A DNA stretch of 64,000 bases, from contig NC_091979.1 in the NCBI RefSeq assembly GCF_044704955.1, positions 317,068,001 through 317,132,000 of the forward strand, in the 5' to 3' direction. This document shows positions 397-59,571 of this stretch, piece after piece (the first letter of the stretch is position 1; every line of letters begins with the position of its first letter). The position numbers and the translations under genes were made by a program. This DNA comes from Pristiophorus japonicus. Its lineage: Eukaryota. Under the pieces are notes generated by a model, which did no database searches, was not told where the DNA came from, and worked only from the letters and a program-made list of their open reading frames with translations.

Positions 397-3235
397 TCAG
401 TACCCCCTTCCTGCTTTCTCGCCATACCCCTTGATTCCCCGAGTAGTAAGGACTTCATCTAACTCCCTTTTGAATATATTTAGTGAATTGGCCTCAACTA
501 CTTTCTGTGGTAGAGAATTACACAGGTTCACCACTCTCTGGGTGAAGAAGTTTCTCCTCATCTCGGTCCTAAATGGCTTACCCCTTATCCTTAGACTGTG
601 ACCCCTGGTTCTGGACTTCCCCAACATTGGGAACATTCTTCCTGCATCTAACCTGTCCAGTCCCGTCAGAATTTTATATGTTTCTATGAGATCCCCTCTC
701 ATCCTTCTAAACTCCAGTGAATACAGGCCCAGTCGATCCACTCTCTTCTCATATGACAGTCCTGCCATCCCGGGAATCAGTCTGGTGAACCTCCGCTGCA
801 TTCCCTCAATAGCAAGAATGTCCTTCCTCAGATTAGCAGACCAAAACTGAACACAATATTCCAGTTGGGGCCTCACCAAGGCCCTGTACAACTGCAATAA
901 GACTTCCCTGCTCCTATATTCAAATCCCCTTGCTATGAAGGCCAACATACCATTTTCTGCCTTCACCGCCTGCTGTACCTGCATGCCAATCTTCAATGAT
1001 TGATGTACATGACACCCAGGTCTCGCTGCACCTCCCCTTTTCCTAATCTGCCGCCATTCAGATAATATTCTGCCTTCGTGATTTTGCCCCCAAAGTGGAT
1101 AACCTCACATTTATCCACATTATACCGCATCTTCCATGTATTTGCCCACTCACCTAACCTGTCCAAGTCACCCTGCAGCCTCTTAGCATCCTCCTCACAG
1201 CTCACACCGCCACCCAGTTTCGTGTCATCTGCAAACTTGGAGATATTACACTCAATTCCATCATCCAAATCATTAATGTATATTGTAAAGAGTTGGGGTC
1301 CCAGCACTGAGCCCTGCGGCACTCCACTAGTCACTGCCTGCCATTCTGAAAAGGACCCGTTAATCCCGACTCTCTGCTTCCTGTCTGCCAACCAGTTCTC
1401 TATCCACGTCAGTACATTACTCCCAATATCATGTGCTTTAATTTTGCACACCAATCTCTTGTGTGGGACCTTGTCAAAAGCCTTTTGAAAGTCCAAATAC
1501 ACCACATCCACTGGTTCTCCCTTGTCCACTCTACTGGTTACATCCTCAAAAAATTCCAGAAGATTCGTCAAGCATGATTTCCCCTTCATAAATCCATGCT
1601 GACTTGGACCAATCCTATCACTGCTTTCCAAATGTGCTGCTATTTCATCCTTAATGATTGATTCCAAAACTTTCCCCACGACTGATGTCAGGCTAACCCG
1701 TCTATAATTACCCGTTTTCTCTCTCCCTCCTTTTTTAAAAAGTGGTGTTACATTAGCAACCCTCCAGTCCATAGGAACCGATCCAGAGTCCATAGACTGT
1801 TGGAAAATTATCACCAAAGCATCCACTATTTCAAGGGCCACTTCCTTAAGTACTCTGGGATGTAGACTATCAGGTCCTGGGGATTTATCGGCCTTCAATC
1901 CCGTCAATTTCTCGAACACAATTTCCCGCCTAATAAGGATATCCTTCAGTTCCTCCTTCTCACAAGACCTTCGGTTCCCTAGTACATCGGGAAGGTTATT
2001 TGTGTCTTCCTTTGTGAAGACAGAACCAAAGTACTTGTTCAATTGGTCTGCCATTTCTCTGTTCCCCATTATAAATTCACCCGAATCCGATTGCAAGGGA
2101 CCAACGTTTGTCTTCACTAATCTTTTTCTCTTCACATATCTATAGAAGCTTTTGCAGTCATTTTTTATGTATCCGGCAAGCTTACTCTCGTACTCTATTT
2201 TCCCCCTCTTAATTAAACCCTTTGTCCACCTCTGCTGTATTTTAAATTTCTCCCAGTCCTCCGGCTTGCTACTTTTTCTGGCTAATTTGTATGCCTCTTC
2301 CTTGGATTTAACACTATCCTTAATTTCCCTTGTTAGCCACGGTTGAGCCACCTTCACCGTTTTATTTTTACTCCAGAGAGGGATTTACAAATGTTGAAGT
2401 TCATCCATGTGATCTTTAAAGGTTTGCAATTGCCTATCCACCGTCAACCCTTTAAGCATCATTTGCCAGACTAATCTAGGCAATTCGCGCCTCATACCAT
2501 CAAAGTTACCTTTCCTTAAGTTCAGGACCCTAGTTTCTGAATTAACTTTGTCACTCACCATCTTAATAAAGAATTCTACCATATTATGGTCACTCTTCCC
2601 CAAGGGGCCTCGCACAACAAGATTGCTGATTAGTCCCTTCTCATTACACATCACCCAGTCTTGGATGGCCAGCTCTCTGGTTGGTTCCTCAACATATTGG
2701 TCTAGAAAACCATCCCTAATACACTCCAGGAAATCCTCCTCCACCGCATTGCTACCAGTTAGGTTAGCCCAATCAATATATAGATTAAAGTCGCCCATGA
2801 TTACTGCTGTACCTTTATTGCACACATCCCTTGTTTCTTGTTTGATGCTGTCCCCAACTTCAGTACTACTATTTGGTGGCCTGTACACAACTCCCACTCG
2901 CGTTTTCTGCCCTTTGCTATTCCATAGCTTCACCCATACCAATTCCACATGATCCAAGCTAATGTCCTTCCTTACAATTGCATTAATTTCCTCTTTAACC
3001 AGCAATGCCACCCCGCCTCCTTTTCCTTTCTGTCTATATATCCTAAATGCTGAATACCCCTGCATGTTGAGTTCTCAGCCTTGGTCACCCATGTCTCCGT
3101 GATGCCAATCACATCATACCAGTTAACTGCTATCTGCGCAGTTAATTTGTCCACCTTATTCCGAATACTCCTCGCATTGAGGCACAGAGCTTTCAGGCTT
3201 GTCTTTTGAACATACTTTGACCCTTCCGAATTCTG
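397..3235 (-). pseudogene. CR1 ORF2 (APE endonuclease + reverse transcriptase), frameshifted
   Basis: EN motifs IGITETW, GGGVALLV, VVYRPPN, MGDFN, SDHN. RT motifs LDFQKAFDKVPH, GVPQGSVLGP, FADDT. Split across ORFs 2972-3154, 2385-3065, 993-2357 and 397-996. Confidence 0.93.
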
Positions 3236-4321
3236 CTATAAAGTGGCCCTTTTCGTTTTTTGCCTTGGGTTTCTCTGCCCTCCACTTTTACTATTCTCCT
3301 TTCTATCTTTTGCTTCTGTCTCCATTTTATTTCCCTCTGTCTCCCTGCATAGGTTCCCATCCCCCTGCCATATTAGTTTTAGCTCCTCCCAAACAGCACT
3401 AGCAAACACTCCCCCTAGGACATTGGTTCCGGTCCTGTCCAGGTGCAGACCGTCCGGTTTGTACTGGTCCCACCGCCCCCAGAACCAGTTCCAATGTCCC
3501 AGGAATTTGAATCCCTCCTTTCTGCACCACTGCTCAAGCCATGTATTCATTTGAGCTATCCTGCGATACCTACTCTGACTGGCACGTGGCACTGGTAGCA
3601 ATCCTGAGATTACTACTTTTGAGGTCCTACTTTTTAATTTAACTCCTAGCTCCCTAAATTTGTCTCGTAGGACCTCATCCCATTTTTTACCTATATCATT
3701 GGTACCTATATGCACCACAACAACTGACTGTTCACCCTCCCTTTTCAGAATGTCCTGCACCCGCTCCGAGACATCCTTGATCCTTGCACCAGGGAGGCAA
3801 CATACCATCCTGGAGTCTTGGTTGCGGCCGCAGAAATGCCTATTTATTCACCTTACAATCGAATCCCCTATCACTATTGCTCTCCCACTCTTTTTTCTGC
3901 CCTCCTGTGCAGCAGAGCCAGCCACGCTGCCATGAACCTGGCTGCTGCTGCTCTCCCCTGATTAGTCATCCCCCTCAACCTAACCCAAAGCGGTGTATCT
4001 GTTTTGCAGGTGGATGACCGCAGGGGACCCCTGCACTATCTTCCTTGCACTGCTCTTCCTGTTGGTCTTCCATTCCCTATCTGGCTGTGAACCCTTAACC
4101 TGCGGTAAGACTAACTCATGAAATGTGCTATTCACATCTTTCTTAGCATTGTGCATGCTCCAAAGTGAATCCACCCGCAGCTCCAGTTCCGCAACACGGT
4201 TCGTCAGGAGCTGGAGGCGGATACACTTCCCGCACACGGAGTTGTCAGGGACACCGGAGGCGTCCCTGATTTCCCACATGGTACAGAAAGAGCATAACAC
4301 GTGTCCGAGCTCTCCTGTCAT
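3236..4321 (-). pseudogene. CR1 ORF1 (Cys zinc-finger/coiled coil + SGNH esterase-like), broken
   Basis: CSFC..MWE..CGKC, LQNRY, CLPGARIKD, VHIGTND and DGLHL motifs, in two ORFs. Confidence 0.9.
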
Positions 4322-13147: not shown

Positions 13148-15634
13148 CTTTAATATGCACATAGATTGGGTTAGCCAAACTGGAAGCAATACGGTGGAGG
13201 AGGATTTCCTGGAGTGCATAAGGGATGGTTTTCTAGACCAATATGTCGAGGAACCAACTAGGGGGGAGGCCATCTTAGACTGGGTGTTGTGTAATGAGAG
13301 AGGATTAATTAGCAATCTCATTGTGCGAGGCCCCTTGGGGAAGAGTGACCATAATATGGTCGAATTCTGCATTAGGATGGAGAATGAAACAATTAATTCA
13401 GAGACCATGGTCCAGAACTTAAAGAAGGGTAACTTTGAAGGTATGAGGCATGAATTGGCTAAGATAGATTGGCTAATGATACTTAAGGGGTTGACTGTGG
13501 ATGGGCAATGGCAGACATTTAGAGACCGCATGGATAAATTGCAACAATTGTACATTCCTGTCTGGCGTAAAAATAAAAAAGGGAAGGTGGCTCAACCGTG
13601 GCTATCTAGGGAAATCAGGGATAGTATTAAAGCCAAGGAAATGGCATACAAATTGGCCAGAAATAGCAGCGAACCCGGGGACTGGGAGAAATTTAAAACT
13701 CAGCAGAGGAGGACAAAGGGTTTGATTAGGGCAGGGAAAATGGAGTACGAGAAGAAGCTTGCAGGGAACATGAAGGCGGATTGCAAAAGTTTCTATAGGT
13801 ATGTAAAGAGAAAAAGGTTAGTAAAGACAAACGTAGGTACCCTGCAGTGAGAATCAGGGGAAGTCATAACGGGGAACAAAGAAATGGCAGACCAATTGAA
13901 CAAGTACTTTGGTTCAGTATTCACTAAGGAGGACACAAACAACCTTCCGGATATAAAAGGGGTCAGAGGGTCTAGTAAGGAGGAGGAACTGAGGGAAATC
14001 TTTATTAGTCGGGAAATTGTGTTGGGGAAATTGATGGGATTGAAGGCCGATAAATCCCCAGGGCCTGATGGACTGCATCCCAGAGTACTTAAGGAGGTGG
14101 CCTTGGAAATAGCGGATGCATTGACAGTCATTTTCCAACATTCCATTGACTCTGGATCAGTTCCTATCGAGTGGAGGGTAGCCAATGTAACCCCATTTTT
14201 TAAAAAAGGAGGGAGAGAGAAAGCAGGGAATTATAGACCGGTCAGCCTGACCTCAGTAGTGGGTAAAATGATGGAATCAATTATTAAGGATGTCATAGCA
14301 GTGCATTTGGAAAATGGTGACATGATAGGTCCAAGTCAGCATGGATTTGTGAAAGGGAGATCATGCTTGACAAATCTTCTGGAATTTTTTGAGGATGTTT
14401 CCAGTAAAGTGGACAAAGGAGTACCAGTTGATGTGGTATATTTGGACTTTCAGAAGGCTTTCGACAAGGTCCCACACAGGAGATTAATGTGCAAAGTTAA
14501 AGCACATGGGATTGGGGGAAGTGTGCTGATGTGGATTGAGAACTGGTTGTCAGACAGGAAGCAAAGAGTAGGAGTAAATGGGTACTTTTCAGAATGGCAG
14601 GCAGTGACTAGTGGGGTACCGCAGGGTTCTGTGCTGGGGCCCCAGCTGTTTACATTGTACATTAATGATTTAGACGAGGGGATTAAATGTAGTATCTCCA
14701 AATTTGCGGATTACACTAAGTTGGGTGGCAGTGTGAGCTTCGAGGAGGATGCTATGAGGCTGCAGAGTGACTTGGATAGGTTAGGTGAGTGGGCAAATGC
14801 GTGGCAGATGAAGTATAATGTGGATAAATGTGAGGTTATCCACTTTGGTGGTAAAAACAGAGAGACAGACTATTATCTGAATGGTGACAGATTAGGAAAA
14901 GGGAAGGTGCAACGAGACCTGGGTGTCATGGTACATCAGTCATTGAAGGTTGGCATGCAGGTACAGCAGGCGGTTAAGAAAGCAAATGGCATGTTGGCCT
15001 TCATAGCGAGGGGATTTGAGTACAGGGAGGTGTTGCTACAGTTGTACAGGGCCTTGGTGAGGCCACACCTGGAGTATTGTGTACAGTTTTGGTCTCCTAA
15101 CTTGAGGAAGGACATTCTTGCTATTGAGGGAGTGCAGCGAAGATTCACCAGACTGATTCCCAGGATGGTGGGACTGACCTATCAAGAAAGACTGGATCAA
15201 CTGGGCTTGTATTCACTGGAGTTCAGAAGAGTGAGAGGGGACCTCATAGAAACGTTTAAAATTCTGACGGGTTTGGACAGGTTGGATGCAGGAAGAATGT
15301 TCCCAATGTTGGGGAAGTCCAGAACCAGGGGTCACAGTCTAAGGAGAAGGGGTAAGCCATTTAGGACCGAGATGAGGAGAAACATCTTCACCCAGAGAGT
15401 GGTGAACCTGTGGAATTCTCTACCACAGAAAGTAGTTGAGGCCAATTCACTAAATATATTCAAAAGGGAGTTAGATGAAGTCCTTACTACTCGGGGGATC
15501 AAGGGGTATGGCGTGAAAGCAGGAAGGTGGTACTGAAGTTTCATGTTCAGCCATGAACTCGCTGAATGGCGGTGCAGGCTAGAAGGGCTGAATGGCCTGC
15601 TCCTGCACCTATTTTCTATGTTTCTATGTTTCTA
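13148..15634 (+). mobile_element. 5'-truncated CR1 LINE (partial EN + RT), inactive
   Basis: ORFs 13155-13850 and 13884-15536 are separated by an in-frame TGA. Catalytic FADD is mutated to FADY. (TTTCTATG)n tail. Confidence 0.95.
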
Positions 15635-33120: not shown

Positions 33121-34464
33121 CAAATTAGGCGTCCAGAACGAGGTGGGGGGGGAGGGGGAGGGAAGGGAAGTCATTAAATTCTATAATAAATCTTTATTTA
33201 TACTTATACAAATATTAAACAAATAAATCCAACCTGAATAAACATTTATAAGCAAAGAAAAGATTAAATAAACCATCTTCCTACCTGTGTGAAAGTGCTT
33301 CAGGCAGGCCTTTCGGGACCGAAGGCTGAACGGGCCGGCCCGAGACTTCAGGCAGGGCCCGTCCCCAGCACCAGATTTACAGGTAGGTGGCGTTGGGTCG
33401 GGGAGGTTCGGTTCGGTTCGGGTCGGGTCGGGGGGAGGGAGGGAGGGAGAGAGAGCGGGGGGGGGGAGGGAGGGAGAGAGAGGGGGGGGGTAGGGAGGGA
33501 GGGAGAGAGAGGGGGGCAGGGAGAGAGAGAGAGTGGGGAGGGGGGGAGAGAGAGGGGGGAGGGTGAGAGAGANNNNNNNNNNNNNNNNNNNNNNNNNNNN
33601 NNNNNNNNNNNNNNNNNNNNNNNNNNNNNNNNNNNNNNNNNNNNNNNNNNNNNNNNNNNNNNNNNNNNNNNNNNNNNNNNNNNNNNNNNNNNNNNNNNNN
33701 NNNNNNNNNNNNNNNNNNNNNNNNNNNNNNNNNNNNNNNNNNNNNNNNNNNNNNNNNNNNNNNNNNNNNNNNNNNNNNNNNNNNNGAGAGGTCAGGTCGG
33801 GGAGGGGGAGGTCAGGTCGGATCCAGTCTGGGGGCGGGGGGGGGAGCGGGAGTCGAGTCGTGTCAGATCGGGTCGGGTCGAGTCGGGGTGGGGGGGCGGG
33901 GAGCGGGAGCAGGAGCGCGGGTCGGGTCCAGTCGGCGGGGGGCGGAGCGGGAGCGGGAGCGGGAGTCCGGTCGGGTTGGGGGGGGGGGGGGGGTGGGAGT
34001 CGAGTCGGGGGGGGTCCAGTCGGAGGGTGGGGGGGGTCAGGTTGGGGGGCGGGAGTCGGGTCGGGTCGGGTCCAGTCGGGGGTGGGGGGGAACAGGAGCG
34101 CGGGTCGGATCGGGTCGGGTCCGGTCGGGGGGTGGGGGAAGCAGGAGCTGGCCGGGGGAGGAGCCTTATTCACGCAGACCCAGTGAGGCCATTCGGCCAG
34201 GGCTAGGGGATGCTTGCTTCGGGCGCCTGGAGCTACTGCACTTGCGTGCCCACTATAGCGCGCATGTGCAGAGGTCCCGGCACTGTTTTCAGCGCAGGGA
34301 CCTGGCTCCGCCCCCCCACAGCTCGTGCTGCGCTGCGCGAGGGCCAGAGGACCTGCAGGGAGGTGGAGAATACCGAGGATTTTTTTAGGCGCACTTTGTG
34401 GCGCGAAAAACGGGCGTCCAGGTCGGGACTGCGCCGTTCTAGGCGTGTGTGGAAACTTAGGCCC
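33121..34464. mobile_element. GC-rich non-autonomous element with low-complexity G-rich interior
   Basis: TIR-like right end GGAAACTTAGGCCC. The left end is missing. Confidence 0.5.
33573..33785. other. Assembly gap (213 N)
   Basis: N run inside G-rich low-complexity sequence. Confidence 1.
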
Positions 34465-48774: not shown

Positions 48775-51380
48775 GCTAGTTGGATCCAAAATTGGTTCAG
48801 CGGTAAGAAGCAAAGGGTAATGGTAAATGGATGTTTTTGTGACTGGAAGGATGTTTCCAGTGGGGTCCGCAGGGCTCAGTACTGGGTTTCTTGCTTTTTG
48901 TGGTATACATCAATGATCTAGATTTGATTATCGGGAGTATGATTAAGAAGTTTGCAGGTGACACCAAAATTGGCTGTGTGGTCGTTAATGAAGCAGAAAG
49001 TCATGGACTGCAGGAGGATATCAATCTAATGGTCAGGTGGGCAGAGCAGTGGCAAATGGAATTTAATTTGGATAAGTATGAGGTAATGCACTTTGAGAGG
49101 GCTAATAAGGAAAGGGTATACACATTAACCGGTAAAAGTGTAGATGAATAAAGGGATCTTGGAGTGCTTGTCCACAGATCCCTGAAAGTAGCAGGCCAGG
49201 TGGATAAGGTGGTGAAGAAGGCATACGGAATGGTTGCCTTTCTTGGCTGAGGCACATAATACAAGAGCAGGGAGGTTATGCTTAAAATGTATAATACTTT
49301 GGTTAGGCCACAGCTGGAGTACTGCGTGCAGTTCTGGTCGCCATATTATAGAAAGGACGTGATTGCAATAGAGAGGGTGCAGAGGACATTTGCTAGGATG
49401 CTGCCTGGAATGGAGAAACTTAGCTATGAGGATAGAAACATAGAAACATAGAAAATAGATGCAGGATCAGGCCATTCAGCCCTTCTCGCCTGCACCATCA
49501 TTCAATCAGTTCATGGCTGAACATGAAACTTCAGTACCCCCTTCCTGCTTTCTCGCCATACCCCTTGATCCCCCGAGTAGTAAGGACTTCATCTAACTCC
49601 CTTTTGAATATATTTAGTGAATTGGCCTCAACTACTTTCTGTGGTAGAGAATTCCACAGGTTCACCACTCTCTGGGTGAAGAAGTTTCTCCTCATCTCGG
49701 TCCTAAATGGCTTACCCCTTATCCTTAGACTGTGACTTCCCCAACATTGGGAACATTCTTCCTGCATCTAACCTGTCTAAACCCGTCAGAATTTTAAACG
49801 TTTCTATGAGGTCCCCTCTCATTCTTCTGAACTCCAGTGAATACAAGCCCAGTTGATCCAGTCTTTCTTGATAGGTCAGTCCCACCATCCCGGGAATCAG
49901 TCTGGTGAATCTTCGCTGCACTCTCTCAATAGCAAGAATGTCCTTCCTCAAGTTAGGAGACCAAAACTGTACACAATACTCCAGGTGTGGCCTCACCAAG
50001 GCCCTGTACAACTGTAGCAACACCTCCCAGCCCCTGTACTCAAATCCCCTCGCTATGAAGGCCAACATGCCATTTGCTTTCTTAACCGCCTGCTGTACCT
50101 GCATGCCAACCTTCAATGACTGATGTACCATGACACCCAGGTCTCGTTGCACCTTCCCTTTTACTAATCTGTCACCATTCAGATAATAGTCTGTCTCTCT
50201 GTCTTTACCACCAAAGTGGATAACCTCACATTTATCCACATTATACTTCATCTGCCATTCATTTGCCCACTCACCTAACCTATCCAAGTCACTCTGCAGC
50301 CTCATAGCATCCTCCTCGCAGCTCACACTGCCACCCAACTTAGTGTCATCCGCAAATTTGGAGATACTACATTTAATCCCCTCATCTAAATCATTAATGT
50401 ACAATGTAAACAGCTGGGGCCCCAGCACAGAACCTTGTGGTACCCCACTAGTCACTGCCTGCCATTCTGAAAAGTACCCATTTACTCCTACTCTTTGCTT
50501 CCTGTCTGACAACCAGTTCTCAATCCACGTCAGCACACTACCCCCAATCCCATGTGCTTTAACTTTGCACATTAATCTCTTGTGTGGGACCTTGTCGAAA
50601 GCCTTCTGAAAGTCCAAATATACCACATCATTGGATAGGCTGTGTTTGTTCTCATTGGAACAGAGGATGTTGAGAGGAGACCTCATTGAGGTGTCCAAAA
50701 TTTTGAGGGGTCTGGATATAGTGGATAGCAAGGACCTATTTCCCTTGGTGGTGGGTTCAATTATGAGGGGGCATAGTTTTAAGGTGGTTGGTGGAAGGTT
50801 CAGAGGGGATTTGAGGGGTGGCTTTTTCAAGCAGAGGGTTGTGGGGGTCTGGAACTTAGGGCCTGGAAGGGTGGTGGATGTAGAAACCCTCAACACATTT
50901 AAAAGGTGCTTGGATGGACACTTGAAGTGCCATAATCTGCAGGGTTACATGGACCTAAAGCTGGTAAGTGGGATTAGACTGGATAACCTGTTGTTGGCAG
51001 GCACAGCTATGATGGTAAGTACTGCAGCAAATCGAATATATCCAGGGTGATCTGGACGAGTTTCGATTACCTGGATGGGTTGGAGAGGAATGTTCCGAGA
51101 TATTTTTTCCCCAATTGACCTGGGTTTTTATCTGTTTTTTGCCTTTCCCAGGAGATCACATGGCTCCGGTTGGGGAGGAGTGTAGAATGTTTCGGTGCAA
51201 GGGGTGTCGCAGTTGTGTGGGGCAGACTGGTTGGGCTGGGTGCTCTTTACCTTTCTGCCATTGTTCATTGTTCATACGTTTATATGTAACTTTCAGGGCT
51301 GCTGACTGAGGGCCGTATGTTTCTTTGTCGGCCGGTGTGGACACGATGGGCCGAAATGGCCTCCTTCTGCGTTGTAGATT
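48775..51380 (+). mobile_element. 5'-truncated CR1 of a different subfamily in IFIT, itself interrupted by the CR1 at 49432-50629
   Basis: WIQNW..KKQRVMVNG, FAGDTK, and LSYE..LDRL contiguous across the insertion. 3' end GGGCCGAAATGGCCTCC. Confidence 0.9.
49432..50629 (-). mobile_element. 5'-truncated young CR1
   Basis: (ATAGAAAC)n tail. RT is near-identical to the copy at 13148-15634. Confidence 0.95.
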
Positions 51381-52688
51381 TGCAATTGTGCAAAAATAAA
51401 TGATGGCTTCTGCTCAAATGCCTTTTCAAAATAGTACTTGCATTGATTGATCAACTCAGCTTTCTGTTGAAAAGCAGGATTGCGAGGGGCTTTGCTGCCT
51501 GGATATTTGATCAGTTGAAATATTTTTTTTCTGCAACACTGACCTATTTGGTGGTGTATGAAGGTAGAGTTTGGAGTAATTTTTAATGCTTTCTTCAACA
51601 GCTCCACAGCTTTTTCCACATCTCCTTCTCTTCTGTAAAATTTTGCTGCATAACGAGTTACATATGGAAGATCAGGGGACTTCTGCAATGCTTGTTCAAC
51701 TAATTCGTGTTCTTCCACCTTTTGATTGAACTCTTGTAGTTTTAGAGCCAACATGGCTACAGAGTCATCTGGATCAAGTTCCAGCACACGTCACAACTGC
51801 TTCACTGATTGGCTGCAGTCACCACTCTCTGGGGTACCAGAAAACCCTTCCAGACAGAACAAAACAGTCGCATAGCCAACGTTCCATTCAGTGTCATCAG
51901 GATCTTCCTCCAGAGTCTTCTCAAAACATTCCTTTGCCTCTTCATAGTATTGACAAGGAGAATTCAACAGTGACCAACCCTTCTCCCCGTATACTTCAGG
52001 TATCAGTGCTGTATACTGAGAGCCATCAGTAAATTATTTACAGATCATCTCCAGCTTGTCGAGGTAGGACTGGGCCTCTGTCAGTTGGCCCATGTGATAA
52101 TATACCCAGGCATAGTTTCCATAGGTGATGATGCTTCTTCTTTCAAATTCATGTTCATGGTTCTCCCTCAGAATCTTTTCAGCTTCCTTTAAGTTTTGAA
52201 TTGCCCCTTTGAATTGCCTTGCTGACAGTTTACAAATGCGAGGTGGTTGTCAGACCTGGCCTGATATTTCACACGAGCCTGTATTAAATCTTGTAATCTA
52301 TACTTCATGTCGTCCAAGTCAATGCTGTCTCTCTGTGGGCCCCACGTGAAGTGACATTGAAGCTGGCCAAGTTTTGCTTTCAAGCAATCATTCAGTGTGT
52401 TGCTGTAAGAGAACAAAATAATCAAAGCCCATCTTATGTGTATCTAACTTACATTTTTAGCTCATATATAATCAACATAGCAATGCTGGTAAAGTCAGAA
52501 TAGCAGAACAGATGAGCAGGTCAGTGCACATGGGCCCGGAACACCTCCCTGCAGCCTCACTGCCTGGCATCCCTCAGTTCGGGGGAAACCCATTGGAATC
52601 CCGTAATGGTCCCGGAGGCAACAACAAATGAACAATTGGCTCATGAGTGCCAGCAGAAATCCACGATCATCCATTAGTATGATCATAG

Positions 52689-53048: not shown

Positions 53049-53593
53049 ACTGGGGAAAGAGGGCTCGGGGAATGGGAGACTGGGGAATGGGGGCTCGGGG
53101 AGAGGGAGACTGGGGAATGGGGGCTCGGGGAGAGGGAGACTGGGGAATGGGGGCTCGGGGAGAGGGAGACTGGGGAATGGGGGCTTGGGGAGAGTGAGAA
53201 TGGGGAATGGAGGCTTGGGGAGAGGGAGACTGGGGAATGGGAGCTCGGGGAGAGGGAGACTGGGGAATGGGGGCTCGGGGAGAGGGAGACTGGGAAATGG
53301 GGGCTTGGGGAGAGGGAAACTGGGGAATGGGGGCTCGGGGAGAGGGAGACTGGGGAATGAAGGCTTGGGGAGAGGGAAACTGGGGAATGGGGGCTCAGGG
53401 AGAGGGAGACTGGGGAATGGGAGCTCGGGGAGAGGGAGACTGGGGAATGGGGGCTCAGGGAGAAAGAGATTGGGGAATGGGGGCTCGGGGAGAGGAAGAC
53501 TGGGGAATGGGGCCTCGGGGAGATGGAGACTGGGGAATGGGGGCTCGGGGAGAGGGGGAATGGGGGCTCGGGAGAGAGAGACTGGGGAATGGG
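53049..53593. repeat. G-rich 30-bp minisatellite, left array, about 18 copies
   Basis: Unit GGGGGCTCGGGGAGAGGGAGACTGGGGAAT. Confidence 0.97.
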
Positions 53594-54052: not shown

Positions 54053-54096
54053 CCCGGCAACTGATGATGCAGCTCGCAGTATTTGTCTGATTGGAT
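54053..54096 (+). promoter_or_regulatory. MHC-type X1/X2-Y promoter module (RFX / CREB-ATF / NF-Y)
   Basis: CCCGGCAACTGATG (X1) overlaps TGATGATGC (X2-like), then a 20-bp spacer, then CTGATTGGAT (Y). This matches the motifs and 19-20 bp X-Y spacing of vertebrate MHC promoters. No S box at the canonical distance. Confidence 0.7.
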
Positions 54097-54279: not shown

Positions 54280-55358
54280 CAGCACAGGGCACAGAGACAG
54301 TCCCAGAGACACAGTATCAGCACAGGGCACCGAGACAGTCCCAGAGACACAGTATCAGCACAGGGCACAGAGAGACAGTCCCAGAGACACAGTATCAGCA
54401 CAGGGCACAGAGACAGTCCCAGAGACACAGTATCAGCACAGGGCACCGAGACAGTCCCAGAGACACAGTATCAGCACAGGGCACAGAGAGACAGTCCCAG
54501 AGACACAGTATCAGCACAGGGCACAGAGACAGTCCCAGAGACACAGTATCAGCACAGGGCACCAAGACAGTCCCGGAGACACAGTATCAGCATAGGGCAC
54601 AGAGAGACAGTCCCAGAGACACAGTATCAGCACAGGGCACAGAGAGACAGTCCCAGAGACACAGTATCAGCACAGGGCACAGAGAGACAGTCCCAGAGAC
54701 ACAGTATCAGCACAGGGCACAGAGAGACAGTCCCAGAGACACAGTATCAGCACAGGGCACAGAGAGACAGTCCCAGGGACACAGTATCAGCACTGGGCAC
54801 AGAGAGACAGTCCCAGAGACACAGTATCAGCACAGGGCACCGAGAGACAGTCTCAGAGACACAGTATCAGCACAGGGCACAGAGACAGTCCCAGAGACAC
54901 AGTATCAGCACAGGGCACAGAGACAGTCCCAGAGACACAGTATCAGCACTGGGCACAGAGAGACAGTCCCAGAGACACAGTATCGGCACAGGGCACAGAG
55001 AGACAGTCCCAGGGACACAGTATCAGCACTGGGCACAGAGAGACAGTCCCAGGGACACAGTATCAGCACAGGGCACAGAGAGACAGTCCCAGAGACACAG
55101 TATCAGCACAGGGCACAGAGAGACAGTCCCAGGGACACAGTATCAGCACTGGGCACAGAGAGACAGTCCCAGAGACACAGTATCAGCACTGGGCACAGAG
55201 AGACAGTCCCAGAGACACAGTATCAGCACTGGGCACAGAGAGACAGTCCCAGAGACACAGTATCAGCACTGGGCACAGAGAGACAGTCCCAGAGACACAG
55301 TATCAGCACAGGGCACAGAGAGACAGTCCCAGAGACACAGTATCGGCACAGGGCACAG
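54280..55358. repeat. 38/40-bp minisatellite, about 27 copies
   Basis: Unit AGCACAGGGCACAGAG(AG)ACAGTCCCAGAGACACAGTATC. Confidence 0.97.
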
Positions 55359-55454
55359 GAATCACACGGTCTGAATTGGGCGCAGCTCACGGACGGTCTC
55401 TCGGAAAAGGATTGCCTGCAAACCGCTCATTCCAGCCTGTCGAGGGAAGTAACA

Positions 55455-56522
55455 ATGTTTGGACTGACCGTGCTGGCCCTTCTGTGTGGAGAGGTGTGTG
55501 CAGGCTCTCACTCCCTACGGTACATGCACACGGCTATCACTCCGCTCCCGGGCATTGCTGAGTTCACCGATGTGGGTTATGTGGATGACCAGCAGTTTAT
55601 TTACTATGACAGTGTGAGCCGCCAGTACACCCCGCGGCAGCGGTGGATCAGGGAGAGCGAGGGCGCCGAGTACTGGGAGCGCTACACACAGATCCTGCGG
55701 GGCAAGGAGCAGGTGATGAAAGGCAACATTCAGACCGTCTTAACCCGCACCAACCAGACCGGCGGGATCCACACGCTGCAGAGGTTGTGCGGCTGTGAGC
55801 TGCGGGATGACGGCACCACCAGCGGCTTCTGGCAGTACGGCTGGGACGGGAAGGACCTGATCAGCTTCGACAAGGATCGCCTGGTGTGGGTCACCCCGGT
55901 ACCGTGGGGAGAGATCACCAAGAACAAGTGGGACCAGGACAGGGCCGAAATGCAGCAGGACAAAAGTTACCTGGAGCAGGAGTGCATCGAGTGGCTGAAG
56001 AAATACCTGAAGGCTGGAGAGAGAGAACTGGGAGCTGTTGCTCCTCAAGTGTTTCCTTCTGTGGACAAGGCGTCGAATATTAAAGCCCCCCAACTCTCCT
56101 GTCTCCTCACAGGTTTTTACCCTCGCGAAATCCAAGTGACCCTCCTGAGAAATGGCGAGCCAATCAGGGACACGGAATCCACGGGCATCCTGCCCAACCA
56201 CGATGGCACCTACCAGCTCACGACATGGGCTCAGATCGAGCCCGCGGATGGAGCCACCTATTCCTGTCAGTATGAGCAGAGCGGCCAAGCAGGAGGGAAG
56301 ACCCGAGACTGGGACGGGACGTTCCGAGTGACTCCAGGATCGCCAGAGGGAACAAATAGGGGTTTGATTGTTGGAATTGTGATTGCTGCCGTCGCCCTGA
56401 TTGCTCTTGTGATCGGTGCGGTTGTGTGGAAGAGGAGAGGAGGAGAGGAGACATCTGGTTACAGCCCAGCGAACCCTGCTGAACGAGGAGAATTATCCCC
56501 AAACTCACCAGCCCAAGCCTGA
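55455..56522 (+). CDS. MHC class I heavy chain, shark classical UAA-like, intronless, 355 aa
   Basis: ACAATG start and 16-aa leader. Alpha1 GSHSLRY..VGYVDD..EYW..NQT, alpha2 HTLQ..GC..WDGKD..TKNKW..YLEQECIEWLKKYL, Ig-C1 alpha3 C..TGFYP..PNHDGTYQ..YSC, then TM and a cytoplasmic GYSPA tail. Uninterrupted ORF. Confidence 0.95.
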   Translation: MFGLTVLALLCGEVCAGSHSLRYMHTAITPLPGIAEFTDVGYVDDQQFIYYDSVSRQYTPRQRWIRESEGAEYWERYTQILRGKEQVMKGNIQTVLTRTNQTGGIHTLQRLCGCELRDDGTTSGFWQYGWDGKDLISFDKDRLVWVTPVPWGEITKNKWDQDRAEMQQDKSYLEQECIEWLKKYLKAGERELGAVAPQVFPSVDKASNIKAPQLSCLLTGFYPREIQVTLLRNGEPIRDTESTGILPNHDGTYQLTTWAQIEPADGATYSCQYEQSGQAGGKTRDWDGTFRVTPGSPEGTNRGLIVGIVIAAVALIALVIGAVVWKRRGGEETSGYSPANPAERGELSPNSPAQA

Positions 56523-56773
56523 GGCTGGTCCCGAAGTGAAGTTCACTGGGACTAGAATCTGGACTTGCTGTGTCGCAAGGAGGGTTCATTCAGAAGCAAT
56601 CCACGATTCTGCATCTTCATTTCGTTTGATTGTCACTGGCTGCTGCCAGTGTTAATAGTAATCGGTAACGTATCTATCATTGAGTGGGTTTGGGGATATT
56701 TTCTTTTTGGTGATTGGATAGAAATCTCCAGTTGGGTCTTTTGGTGTTTAATGTAAATGAGATATGTCTAATT

Positions 56774-56834
56774 CGGCACGGGCTGGATGGCCAAATGGTC
56801 GTCTTCCGTGCTGCAACCATTCTATGATTCTATG
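56774..56834 (+). mobile_element. CR1 3'-terminal fragment with (ATTCTATG)2 tail ending the class I 3' region
   Basis: GGCACGGGCTGGATGGCCAAATGGTCGTCTTCCGTGCTGCAACCATTCTATGATTCTATG resembles the other CR1 3' ends in the window. Confidence 0.8.
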
Positions 56835-56847
56835 TATGGTGGCCGGA

Positions 56848-57628
56848 GGAGAGGGAGACTGGGAATGGGGGCTGGGGGAGAGAGGGAGACTGGGAATGGG
56901 GGCTTGGGGAGAGAGAGACTGGGGAATGGGGGCTCAGGGAGAGGGAGACTGGGGAATGGGGGCTCGTGGAGAGGGAGACTGGGGAATGGGGGGTGGGGGA
57001 GAGGGAGACTGGGGAATGGGGGCTCGGGGAGAGAGGGAGAGACTGGGGAATGGGGGCTTGGGAAGAGGGAGACTGGGAATGGGGGCTCCGGGCGAGGGAG
57101 ACTGGGGAATGGGGGCTTGGGGAGAGTGGGAGACTGAGGAATGGGAGCTTGGGGAGAGGGAGACTGGGGAATGGGGGTTCAGGGAGACGGTGACTGGGGA
57201 ATGGGGGCTCAGGGAGCGGGAGACTGGCGAATGGGGGCTTGGGGACTGGGAGACTTGGGAATGGGGGCTCGGGGAGAGAGAGACTGGGGAATGAGGGCTT
57301 GGGGAGAGGGAGACTTGGGAATGGGGCCTCGGGGAGAGAGAGACTGGGGAATGGGGGCTCGGGGAGCGGGAGACTGGGGAATGAGGGCTTGGGGAGAGGG
57401 AGACTTGGGAATGGGGCCTCGTGGAGAGAGAGACTGGGGAATGGGGGCTCGGGGAGAGAGGGAGACTGGGGAATGGGGGCTCTGGGAGAGGGAGACTGGG
57501 GAATGGGGGATTGGGGACTGGGAGACTTGGGAATGGGGGCTCGGGGAGATAGAGACTGGGGAATGGGGGCTCGGGGAGAGAGAGACTGGGGAATGGGGGC
57601 TCGGGGAGAGGGAGACTGGGGAATGGGG
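56848..57628. repeat. G-rich 30-bp minisatellite, right array, about 26 copies
   Basis: Same unit and orientation as 53049-53593, but more heterogeneous. Confidence 0.97.
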
Positions 57629-58490
57629 TGGGTGTGGGTTCCAGTATTTCCCCCAGAGCCGGGAGCAGCAGCAACGTGGTGAGTGGGAGTGACACTGAGA
57701 GAGGAGCAGCCAGTAAAGGGGTGAGTGAAACCTGGGGACCTTACTGTGGGTAAATAGTGAAAGATTATTTCCAGTGGTGGGCGAATGGGGAACTATGGAA
57801 CAGAAACCAAGGATTCTAAAACCTAAAGGGAACGTGATAAATATTTGAAAAGGAAGAATGTTATAAGATCTGGGGGGAATGGGATTACAGAAGAGAGTGC
57901 GAGCTCCGAGGCCGAATGGTCTCCTCCTGTGTAGTCATTTCTATAATTCTATGAAAACCCTCCTTTATTGAGACCGAACACATGGAATGGTTTAGAAATG
58001 TTGGTGCTGAGCTGAGTTTAGGACAATGTTCCCTGTGAGAAGTGCCCCAAACACTGAGCTCACTGCCCTTTGCGCAATCTCTCGGATTGGTTCAGGTGGG
58101 TCTGTGCCGGCCGGGTTTGACGTGTGAAGTCCAAATACAGATCAGCTCAGACTGAGGTTCCCAGTTCAGAATTGTCACCTTCACACGGAACCGGAGACCA
58201 AATCAGATTCCAAGGAGATAGAGAGAGAGATGGGGCCTGTTAAATGTGGCTTCAACTGGGGAGCCTGACCTCACCTGGTGCAGTGCAGGGGGATTCTGGG
58301 TATGGTTTCAGGGTGAGTATCAGTGGGTTAAAGTATTACTGCTAGTTACACGTAGGATAGAGAGACATTACACCTATTACTGCTTGTAACATATAGACTA
58401 TCAATGAGTTATTGTATTACTGTTGGTTGTGAGGGGCATCTGATTGTCAGCACTTTTTCGAAATCAGGGATTCCTAAAAATGTATAAAAC

Positions 58491-59571
58491 TGTCACGAAT
58501 GTGTAAAACGGATAAGAATATTATGTTTAAATCGTTGTTTTGAACTGCAGACGGAATATCTATTCGAATCAGAGAAATGCTTAGAAATGGAGGGTATAGT
58601 TTTTTGTACTATTTACAATCTCCCTGATGCTAGGCAATTTAAATACTTGTTGATGTATTTTATGTATAATGCAACGGGTAGGGTTTAAAGTTACCTGAAC
58701 AAAACTGCTGGCGTAGATAATGAAAGGAAGTTTGTAGAGTTACGGTAAACATGTTGCTATGTCGTAAAAGAGGTAACACTCTGGGGTGAGCAGTTTTCTG
58801 GTTTTGCTTCTGTAGAAAAAAAATGAAGTAGAGGGAACCTAATTAATCAAAGGGGACCTAATTAAGTAACGTTAACAACCAAAAACAAAGGCTGTCAGAA
58901 ACAAAAGAAATACGTGCTCCGAAACACAGGGAAAATGTTAAAACTCCAACTCTTCGGAAGATAAATCACCTTATCACAGTATAACCCAGACAGTTGGGCC
59001 AAGGTTAGGTCACATGAGGTGATAAATGATTACGGGAAACAAAGGCGGATTGAGAAAAATCTCAACTGGTTGAGAGCAGATCAGCCAAGAGGTGCAGACC
59101 TGAGAATGATGTAGCACGTAACTTATCAGATAAAAGGCGCACAGGGGAGGTAACGAAGCTTGCTGTCAATATAATTGTATTAACTAATTAATATTTGCAA
59201 TCATAAAGTTAGGCGAAACTTTGTGATGCGGCAGGGAAACAACAAATGGAAAGCTTCCACACGGAACTTCATAATTTTGTATGTATTTTGACTGTTACTA
59301 TAAAAATAGTAACCTGACGCTTGTTCGAGGAGAACAGTTAGTTTGGATCACCGAGTTACTGAACTCGTGCAGAAGCTGTCTTTCTCTCGATCGAGTACTT
59401 AATAAACAAATCTTTTCTCCAAAACAGACTTGTGTTGAGCATCTTTGTAATACTCCACATCAGCTTCATAGTTCAAAGAGTAGAGGAATAAGGCTGTGTA
59501 GTGATTGTTCCTGGGAGAATAGAGACAGAGAGGTATCAAAGGAATTCCACAGAAAAGCTACTTCGATAAGA
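58491..59571 (+). mobile_element. Putative 5' LTR (about 1.08 kb) of a retrovirus-like element
   Basis: Starts TGTCACGAA, TATAAAA at about 59299, AATAAA at 59401, imperfect inverted end TTCGATAAGA. Followed by gag. Confidence 0.65.

Follow-up and report, generated by a model that had tools for sequence, protein, structure and literature searches.

How does a shark genome come to contain a working immune gene that has no coding introns and ends in a retrotransposon terminus instead of a poly(A) tail? The question is raised by a major histocompatibility complex (MHC) class I gene of the Japanese sawshark, Pristiophorus japonicus, located in a 64,000-nt stretch of contig NC_091979.1 (assembly GCF_044704955.1, positions 317,068,001 to 317,132,000, forward strand). 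This whole stretch is referred to below as the window, and positions are counted from its first letter. The original prediction, made from the letters of the window, proposed a retrogene mobilised by CR1, a long interspersed element (LINE). The explanation favoured here, to which we give about an even chance of being right, is that CR1 machinery primed on an inherited module in the 3' untranslated region (3'UTR) of class I RNA to make an intron-free copy.

A class I gene ending at a CR1 terminus

An intact open reading frame (ORF) of 355 amino acids was read directly at 55455-56522 (+), with the stop codon ending at 56522. A domain search identifies MHC_I (alpha1-alpha2) and C1-set domains, and a single exon holds the leader, alpha1-3, the transmembrane segment (TM) and the cytoplasmic tail. 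The protein is 99% identical to annotated P. japonicus proteins, and self-comparison of the 64-kb window revealed no second class I copy. A processed retrogene would lack introns that its parent carries; here the coding part lies on one exon, and one sister model (P0125) has a 5' intron.

The stop codon is followed by 251 nt of unique 3'UTR (56523-56773, +), with no match elsewhere in the window by self-comparison, and then by a CR1-type 3' module of 61 nt (56774-56834, +) that consists of a hairpin (56774-56813), a spacer and (ATTCTATG)2 at 56819-56834. This anatomy confirms the predicted order of about 250 nt of 3'UTR-like sequence and a 60-nt same-strand CR1 terminus with a pair of octamers. 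The CR1 ending itself stands, with the terminus moved from 56840 to 56834 and the ORF start placed at 55455. CR1 retrotransposition is considered to require, at the 3' end, a hairpin together with the ATTCTRTG octamer (PMC8665684 and PMC5729268, each citing Suh 2015). Both parts are present. The octamer of the module is the CR1 ATTCTRTG microsatellite (consensus in PMC8665684 and PMC5729268), and the pair at 56819-56834 is an exact match, with 0.04 expected by chance. On folding, the hairpin forms 17 bp, interrupted, at -29.1 kcal/mol (z = -3.3).

The end of the module is also that of the element. Nine other CR1-type 3' ends of the window align with it from 'CGGCAC' on and not upstream of 'CGGCAC'. 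Eight public runs were found, four of which were compared over 55340-56900. X1 is DNA of the same organism, sequenced at genome scale. Among its contigs from other CR1 copies, 271 begin to align near 56789, preceded by CR1 consensus (...GCCGGCACGGGCTCGACG), and in 208 the alignment breaks off at 56832-56834, which identifies 56834 as the natural CR1 3' end. Only about 2 nt separate this end from a 30-mer minisatellite that starts at 56836. The tail family reaches a depth of 114,409 in X1 compared with about 200 for the gene family. A 5'-truncation gradient of CR1 was sought in X1 depths and contig counts; the profile is not monotonic, and no claim is made from it.

No poly(A) tail is found at the 3' end, where a processed retrogene is expected to have one. 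In agreement with the original prediction, a scan of 56523-59400 for AATAAA, ATTAAA and A-runs of at least 6 was empty, the first AATAAA being at 59401. An Rfam search of 56400-58100 produced chance-level matches only.

The same tail in the dominant class I transcript

Whether this tail belongs to the window copy or to its lineage can be read from transcripts. The depth pattern alone led us to treat runs X5 and X6 as RNA: both are small contig sets in which class I coding depth of 1e4-1e5 stands beside empty bins. The relevant relative of the window protein is P0005, a sawshark class I protein (UniRef UPI00398F448E) with 74% amino acid identity to it. The dominant class I contig of X6 (record 19; 663 nt, depth 936) matches the window at 87% over 56145-56533, continues with 93 unmatched letters opposite 92, and then matches at 84% over 56626-56790, such that the distal 3'UTR (56626-56773, +) is common to the dominant class I mRNA. 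Its terminal 14 loose letters are GCCGAATGGCCTTC, the CR1 core, and the distance from stop codon to CR1 hairpin is equal in this transcript and the window copy. The same 3'UTR/CR1 junction is spanned by X5 record 16 (56747-56831, ~85%). Given that each 31-mer of such a contig occurs in reads, the junction between unique 3'UTR and CR1 hairpin is real in the dominant transcript.

High-depth contigs connect this transcript to P0005. Their loose ends, translated by hand, give NQGVKG, KEPNL and LTRTNQSGG, all P0005 peptides, indicating that the CR1 module belongs to the 3'UTR of the main expressed class I gene. Positions 56646, 56664 and 56766 are covered in X5 by contigs totalling a depth of 2e4-8e4. 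At 56877-56900, depth is 35 versus 1e4: high-depth transcripts do not extend there, and P0005-type contigs end inside the tail.

The CR1 tail is an inherited part of the class I lineage 3'UTR, not a later insertion into the window copy. One might suspect that a severely 5'-truncated CR1 had independently inserted at a later time into the 3' flank of this copy, given the frequency of CR1-type tails (about 10 in 64 kb, and about five per 64 kb on the same strand) and another same-strand tail lying 1.1 kb downstream (57904-57953). From the same-strand frequency, the chance of a tail ending no more than 320 nt past a given stop codon is roughly 2-3%. The fragment is, however, without a flanking target-site duplication (TSD), the only candidate around its 61 nt being TATG, itself part of the octamer. 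Such an insertion with its own TSD had been raised at the outset as a case that would overturn the retrogene reading; for the window copy it is ruled out by the tail at the homologous site in parent-type mRNA, and any residual chance is negligible.

The same evidence separates the two routes that had been proposed for acquiring the tail. A CR1 end in the parental 3'UTR is directly supported by the dominant X6 transcript. A template switch, in which CR1 reverse transcriptase (RT) started on CR1 RNA and jumped to class I mRNA at the founding of the copy, is not; it predicts that the parent mRNA lacks the LINE tail, which is present at the same site in the parent-type mRNA. Switching of this kind is well documented for CR1-tailed short interspersed elements (SINEs; PMC5729268), and it would account for the presence of only 61 nt of CR1 and for the lack of poly(A) at the junction. 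However, because the tail occupies the same place in the parent-type mRNA, a switch could be retained only if the main class I gene were itself a retrogene, the tail-bearing main transcript then coming from a sibling. Against it speak this need for the species' dominant class I gene to be a retrogene as well, and the equal stop-to-tail distance in the two genes. The tail is probably not a template-switch product, and we regard this route as very unlikely.

Contigs identical to the window are likewise present in X5 and X6. Window-type contigs, at a depth of 35-50 in X5 and 6-7 in X6, span 55385-55576, 55694-56285 and 56272-56831, the last of these being X5 record 14 with 1 difference to the window. 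As these contigs reach 56831, the class I gene family is transcribed through the CR1 tail. The contig ends at 55385 and 56831 are unusable as RNA ends, since contigs presumably also stop where near-identical copies differ or a repeat starts. The window bases C, G and G at 56646, 56664 and 56766 are present in X5 record 14 and in 0 of 9-15 X1 DNA contigs, all of which have T; they are either a copy-specific haplotype that is by chance the transcribed one, or rare variants lost from contigs. Run X7, labelled as another organism (B), contains pieces at 55762-56064 and 56353-56501 with 1 and 2 differences, respectively. The first spans both alpha2 borders without an intron, and X7 also contains the 30-mer repeat.

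Route and age of the copy

In the favoured explanation, an old CR1 fragment would have been resident in the class I 3'UTR, forming a module common to the main, very highly expressed P0005-type mRNA. Spliced class I RNA with this module would have served as a template for CR1 RT in trans, in the manner of a SINE. The template requirement agrees with the dominant transcript contig, which continues into the hairpin and core of CR1. If priming took place on the octamer repeats, the copy would lack coding introns as well as a poly(A) signal and tail, and would end exactly at the CR1 terminus. The founder would have stayed intact and transcribed, and would later have multiplied at the DNA level to at least six near-identical genes, one of which is held by the window. 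A fuller account can be offered tentatively, at somewhat less than an even chance: the main class I mRNA of the sawshark would be a natural SINE-like template, and CR1 would have copied the gene and its promoter region into an interferon-gene neighbourhood, where the copy survived, was expressed and multiplied.

Tree and cluster data indicate an old founder and a recent expansion. In a maximum-likelihood tree, the window protein and P0001 are sister to P0005 (support 90/84), followed by Squalus and then Heptranchias, with a stem length of 0.25 for the window protein and P0001 compared with 0.19 for P0005. This order and these stem lengths put the divergence from P0005 far back, close to the separation of sawsharks and dogfish; the ORF has remained intact. 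The 90% cluster contains six distinct near-identical proteins that differ by 1-6 residues, a pattern that points to recent DNA-level multiplication, as judged from the proteins. Depth in X1 fits a multi-copy family, with window-identical contigs at ~195-200 compared with 14-20 for single diverged paralogs. The window copy most likely arose by duplication, at the DNA level, of a founder older than itself. In addition, diverged X1 contigs (records 5 and 7) cross exon borders without introns, which reveals further retrocopies of the class I family.

An old founder also gives room for a history in which the tail had no role. The CR1 fragment would then be a passenger in the 3'UTR of an RNA copied by another route, such as poly(A)-primed reverse transcription, after which a deletion or an expanding minisatellite removed the distal 3'UTR together with the poly(A). 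The tail is indeed older than the copy, minisatellites are unstable and a TSD was not found. However, such loss must have halted within ~2 nt of the natural CR1 terminus, no A-rich remnant is seen, and the octamers are still perfect. We consider this history unlikely, though it carries appreciable weight.

Evidence from the upstream side bears on a different possibility. Two arrays of the same 30-mer minisatellite bracket the class I cassette: the left array (53049-53593) ends at phase 12, and the right array (56836-57628; 26 copies, 85% matches) has its first unit at consensus phase 8. These phases are compatible with an insertion of 3.2 kb into a single array, accompanied by duplication of 4-5 nt, ATGG(G/T); about one-third of random phases also pass. 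The 30-mer at 56877-56900 has an X1 depth of ~2,250 versus ~200 for the gene family, indicating a widespread minisatellite family that is not private to the locus. Inside the cassette, at 54057-54094 (+), stands an MHC-type X1-(20 nt)-Y module, GCAACTGATG ... CTGATTGG, with one match in the window and 0.00 expected. We take the two motifs, with their spacing, to be X1 and Y boxes like those of MHC SXY promoters. The presence of a promoter-like module inside the cassette means that the template began upstream, or that a DNA-level step was involved.

In a mainly DNA-level history, introns would have been lost by recombination with cDNA at the class I locus, after which the gene, its promoter and flanks were moved and multiplied by segmental duplication, with the CR1 tail as mere flank. 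The upstream X-Y module, the identical 30-mer arrays on both sides and the six near-identical copies are all compatible with this. It leaves unexplained, however, why the unique homology should stop at the CR1 terminus and why high-depth parent-type transcripts lack 30-mer sequence past the tail, and simultaneous loss of all introns is rare. A history of this kind appears improbable.

Several points weigh against priming by CR1 on the inherited module. The X-Y module lies 1.36 kb upstream of the gene, where an ordinary mRNA copy would carry no promoter. No TSD is convincing, the candidate for the cassette being the ATGG(G/T) at the array edges, for which the phase test is weak. The RT-bearing CR1 copies of the window belong to another tail subfamily, TTTCTATG, and CR1 is the presumed agent of reverse transcription. 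The P0005-type gene is likewise presumed to have introns. The RNA nature of X5 and X6 is judged by depth pattern, the library type being unrecorded. Finally, as the founder is old, the present junction between tail and minisatellite may be secondary.

Comparable systems and the surroundings of the gene

Stringent LINEs are known to mobilise SINEs in trans through a common 3' tail, as described for eel UnaL2 and UnaSINE1 (Kajikawa and Okada 2002, as cited in a passage of PMC3747384), and CR1-tailed SINEs such as TguSINE1/PittSINE are also known (PMC5729268). The sawshark case resembles these in having a template RNA with a LINE 3' hairpin and terminal repeat, and a copy that ends at the repeat with no poly(A). 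Unlike them, its body is a spliced protein-coding mRNA rather than a tRNA-derived head, and what results is an immune gene, intact and transcribed, whose mobilisation by CR1 is proposed from sequence. Passages of PMC5470649, PMC5729268 and PMC8665684, citing Suh 2015, hold that CR1 limits retrogene formation and that retrogenes are scarce in CR1-dominated genomes. The sawshark module is the same recognition structure (hairpin and ATTCTRTG) and fits the rule that only module-bearing RNAs get copied, a rule to which it would add a positive instance from a shark. Among MHC genes, the wallaby class II DAB processed pseudogene is a comparable intron-free copy away from its normal place. That pseudogene was made by L1, carries both a poly(A) signal and a poly(A) tail, and is no longer functional (PMC3179965), whereas the sawshark copy has a CR1 terminus and is intact, expressed and multi-copy.

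Neither working genes produced by CR1 priming nor intron-free class I genes of sharks turned up in a literature search. If the proposed route is correct, the sawshark copy would be the first natural example of CR1 having produced a working gene, and it would show a route by which immune genes leave the MHC in sharks. A host mRNA with the module, together with an intact, transcribed, intron-free copy that ends at the module, makes the CR1 template rule testable on a natural case. The presence of the module in the main class I mRNA also predicts more retrocopies with the same end point, which can be counted.

Further features surround the gene. A 5'UTR-like stretch occupies 55359-55454 (+), where a paralog mRNA contig (X5 record 9) aligned from 55357 at ~80%. 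Between it and the X-Y module lies a 1.08-kb minisatellite of a 40-mer (54280-55358; 27 copies, 95% matches). The sister protein P0125 implies a splice acceptor at 55435/55436 (+), ttccag before the cut and c after it, 19 nt upstream of the class I ATG. The first 23 residues of P0125 were read by hand at 52606-52676 (+), a candidate recruited upstream exon consisting of MVPEATTNEQLAHECQQKSTIIH followed by gtatga; read exon by exon, the splice join falls on the acceptor at 55435/55436. As P0125 joins these two sites, one annotated model has a 2.76-kb 5' intron over the entire upstream cassette. The class I gene may use this putative recruited 5' exon and its promoter, in which case both minisatellites and the X-Y module would be intronic.

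Directly after the right 30-mer array, within 57629-57953, a second same-strand CR1-type tail (…GGCCGAATGGTCTCC…TTTCTATAATTCTATG) ends at 57953 and, by its sequence, looks like an independent truncated CR1. On the other side, an ORF encoding TPR repeats lies at 51296-51787 (-), in head-to-head orientation to the class I cassette, and probably extends to ~52400, consistent with the IFIT-like pseudogene that had earlier been noted. A CR1-type tail fragment is found at 51330-51380, and a run of N occupies 33573-33785. At 397-3808 (-), 49439-50896 (-) and 13155-15628 (+) lie CR1-like LINE copies that carry TTTCTATG tail repeats and long RT ORFs (RVT_1), those of the last copy being near-complete.
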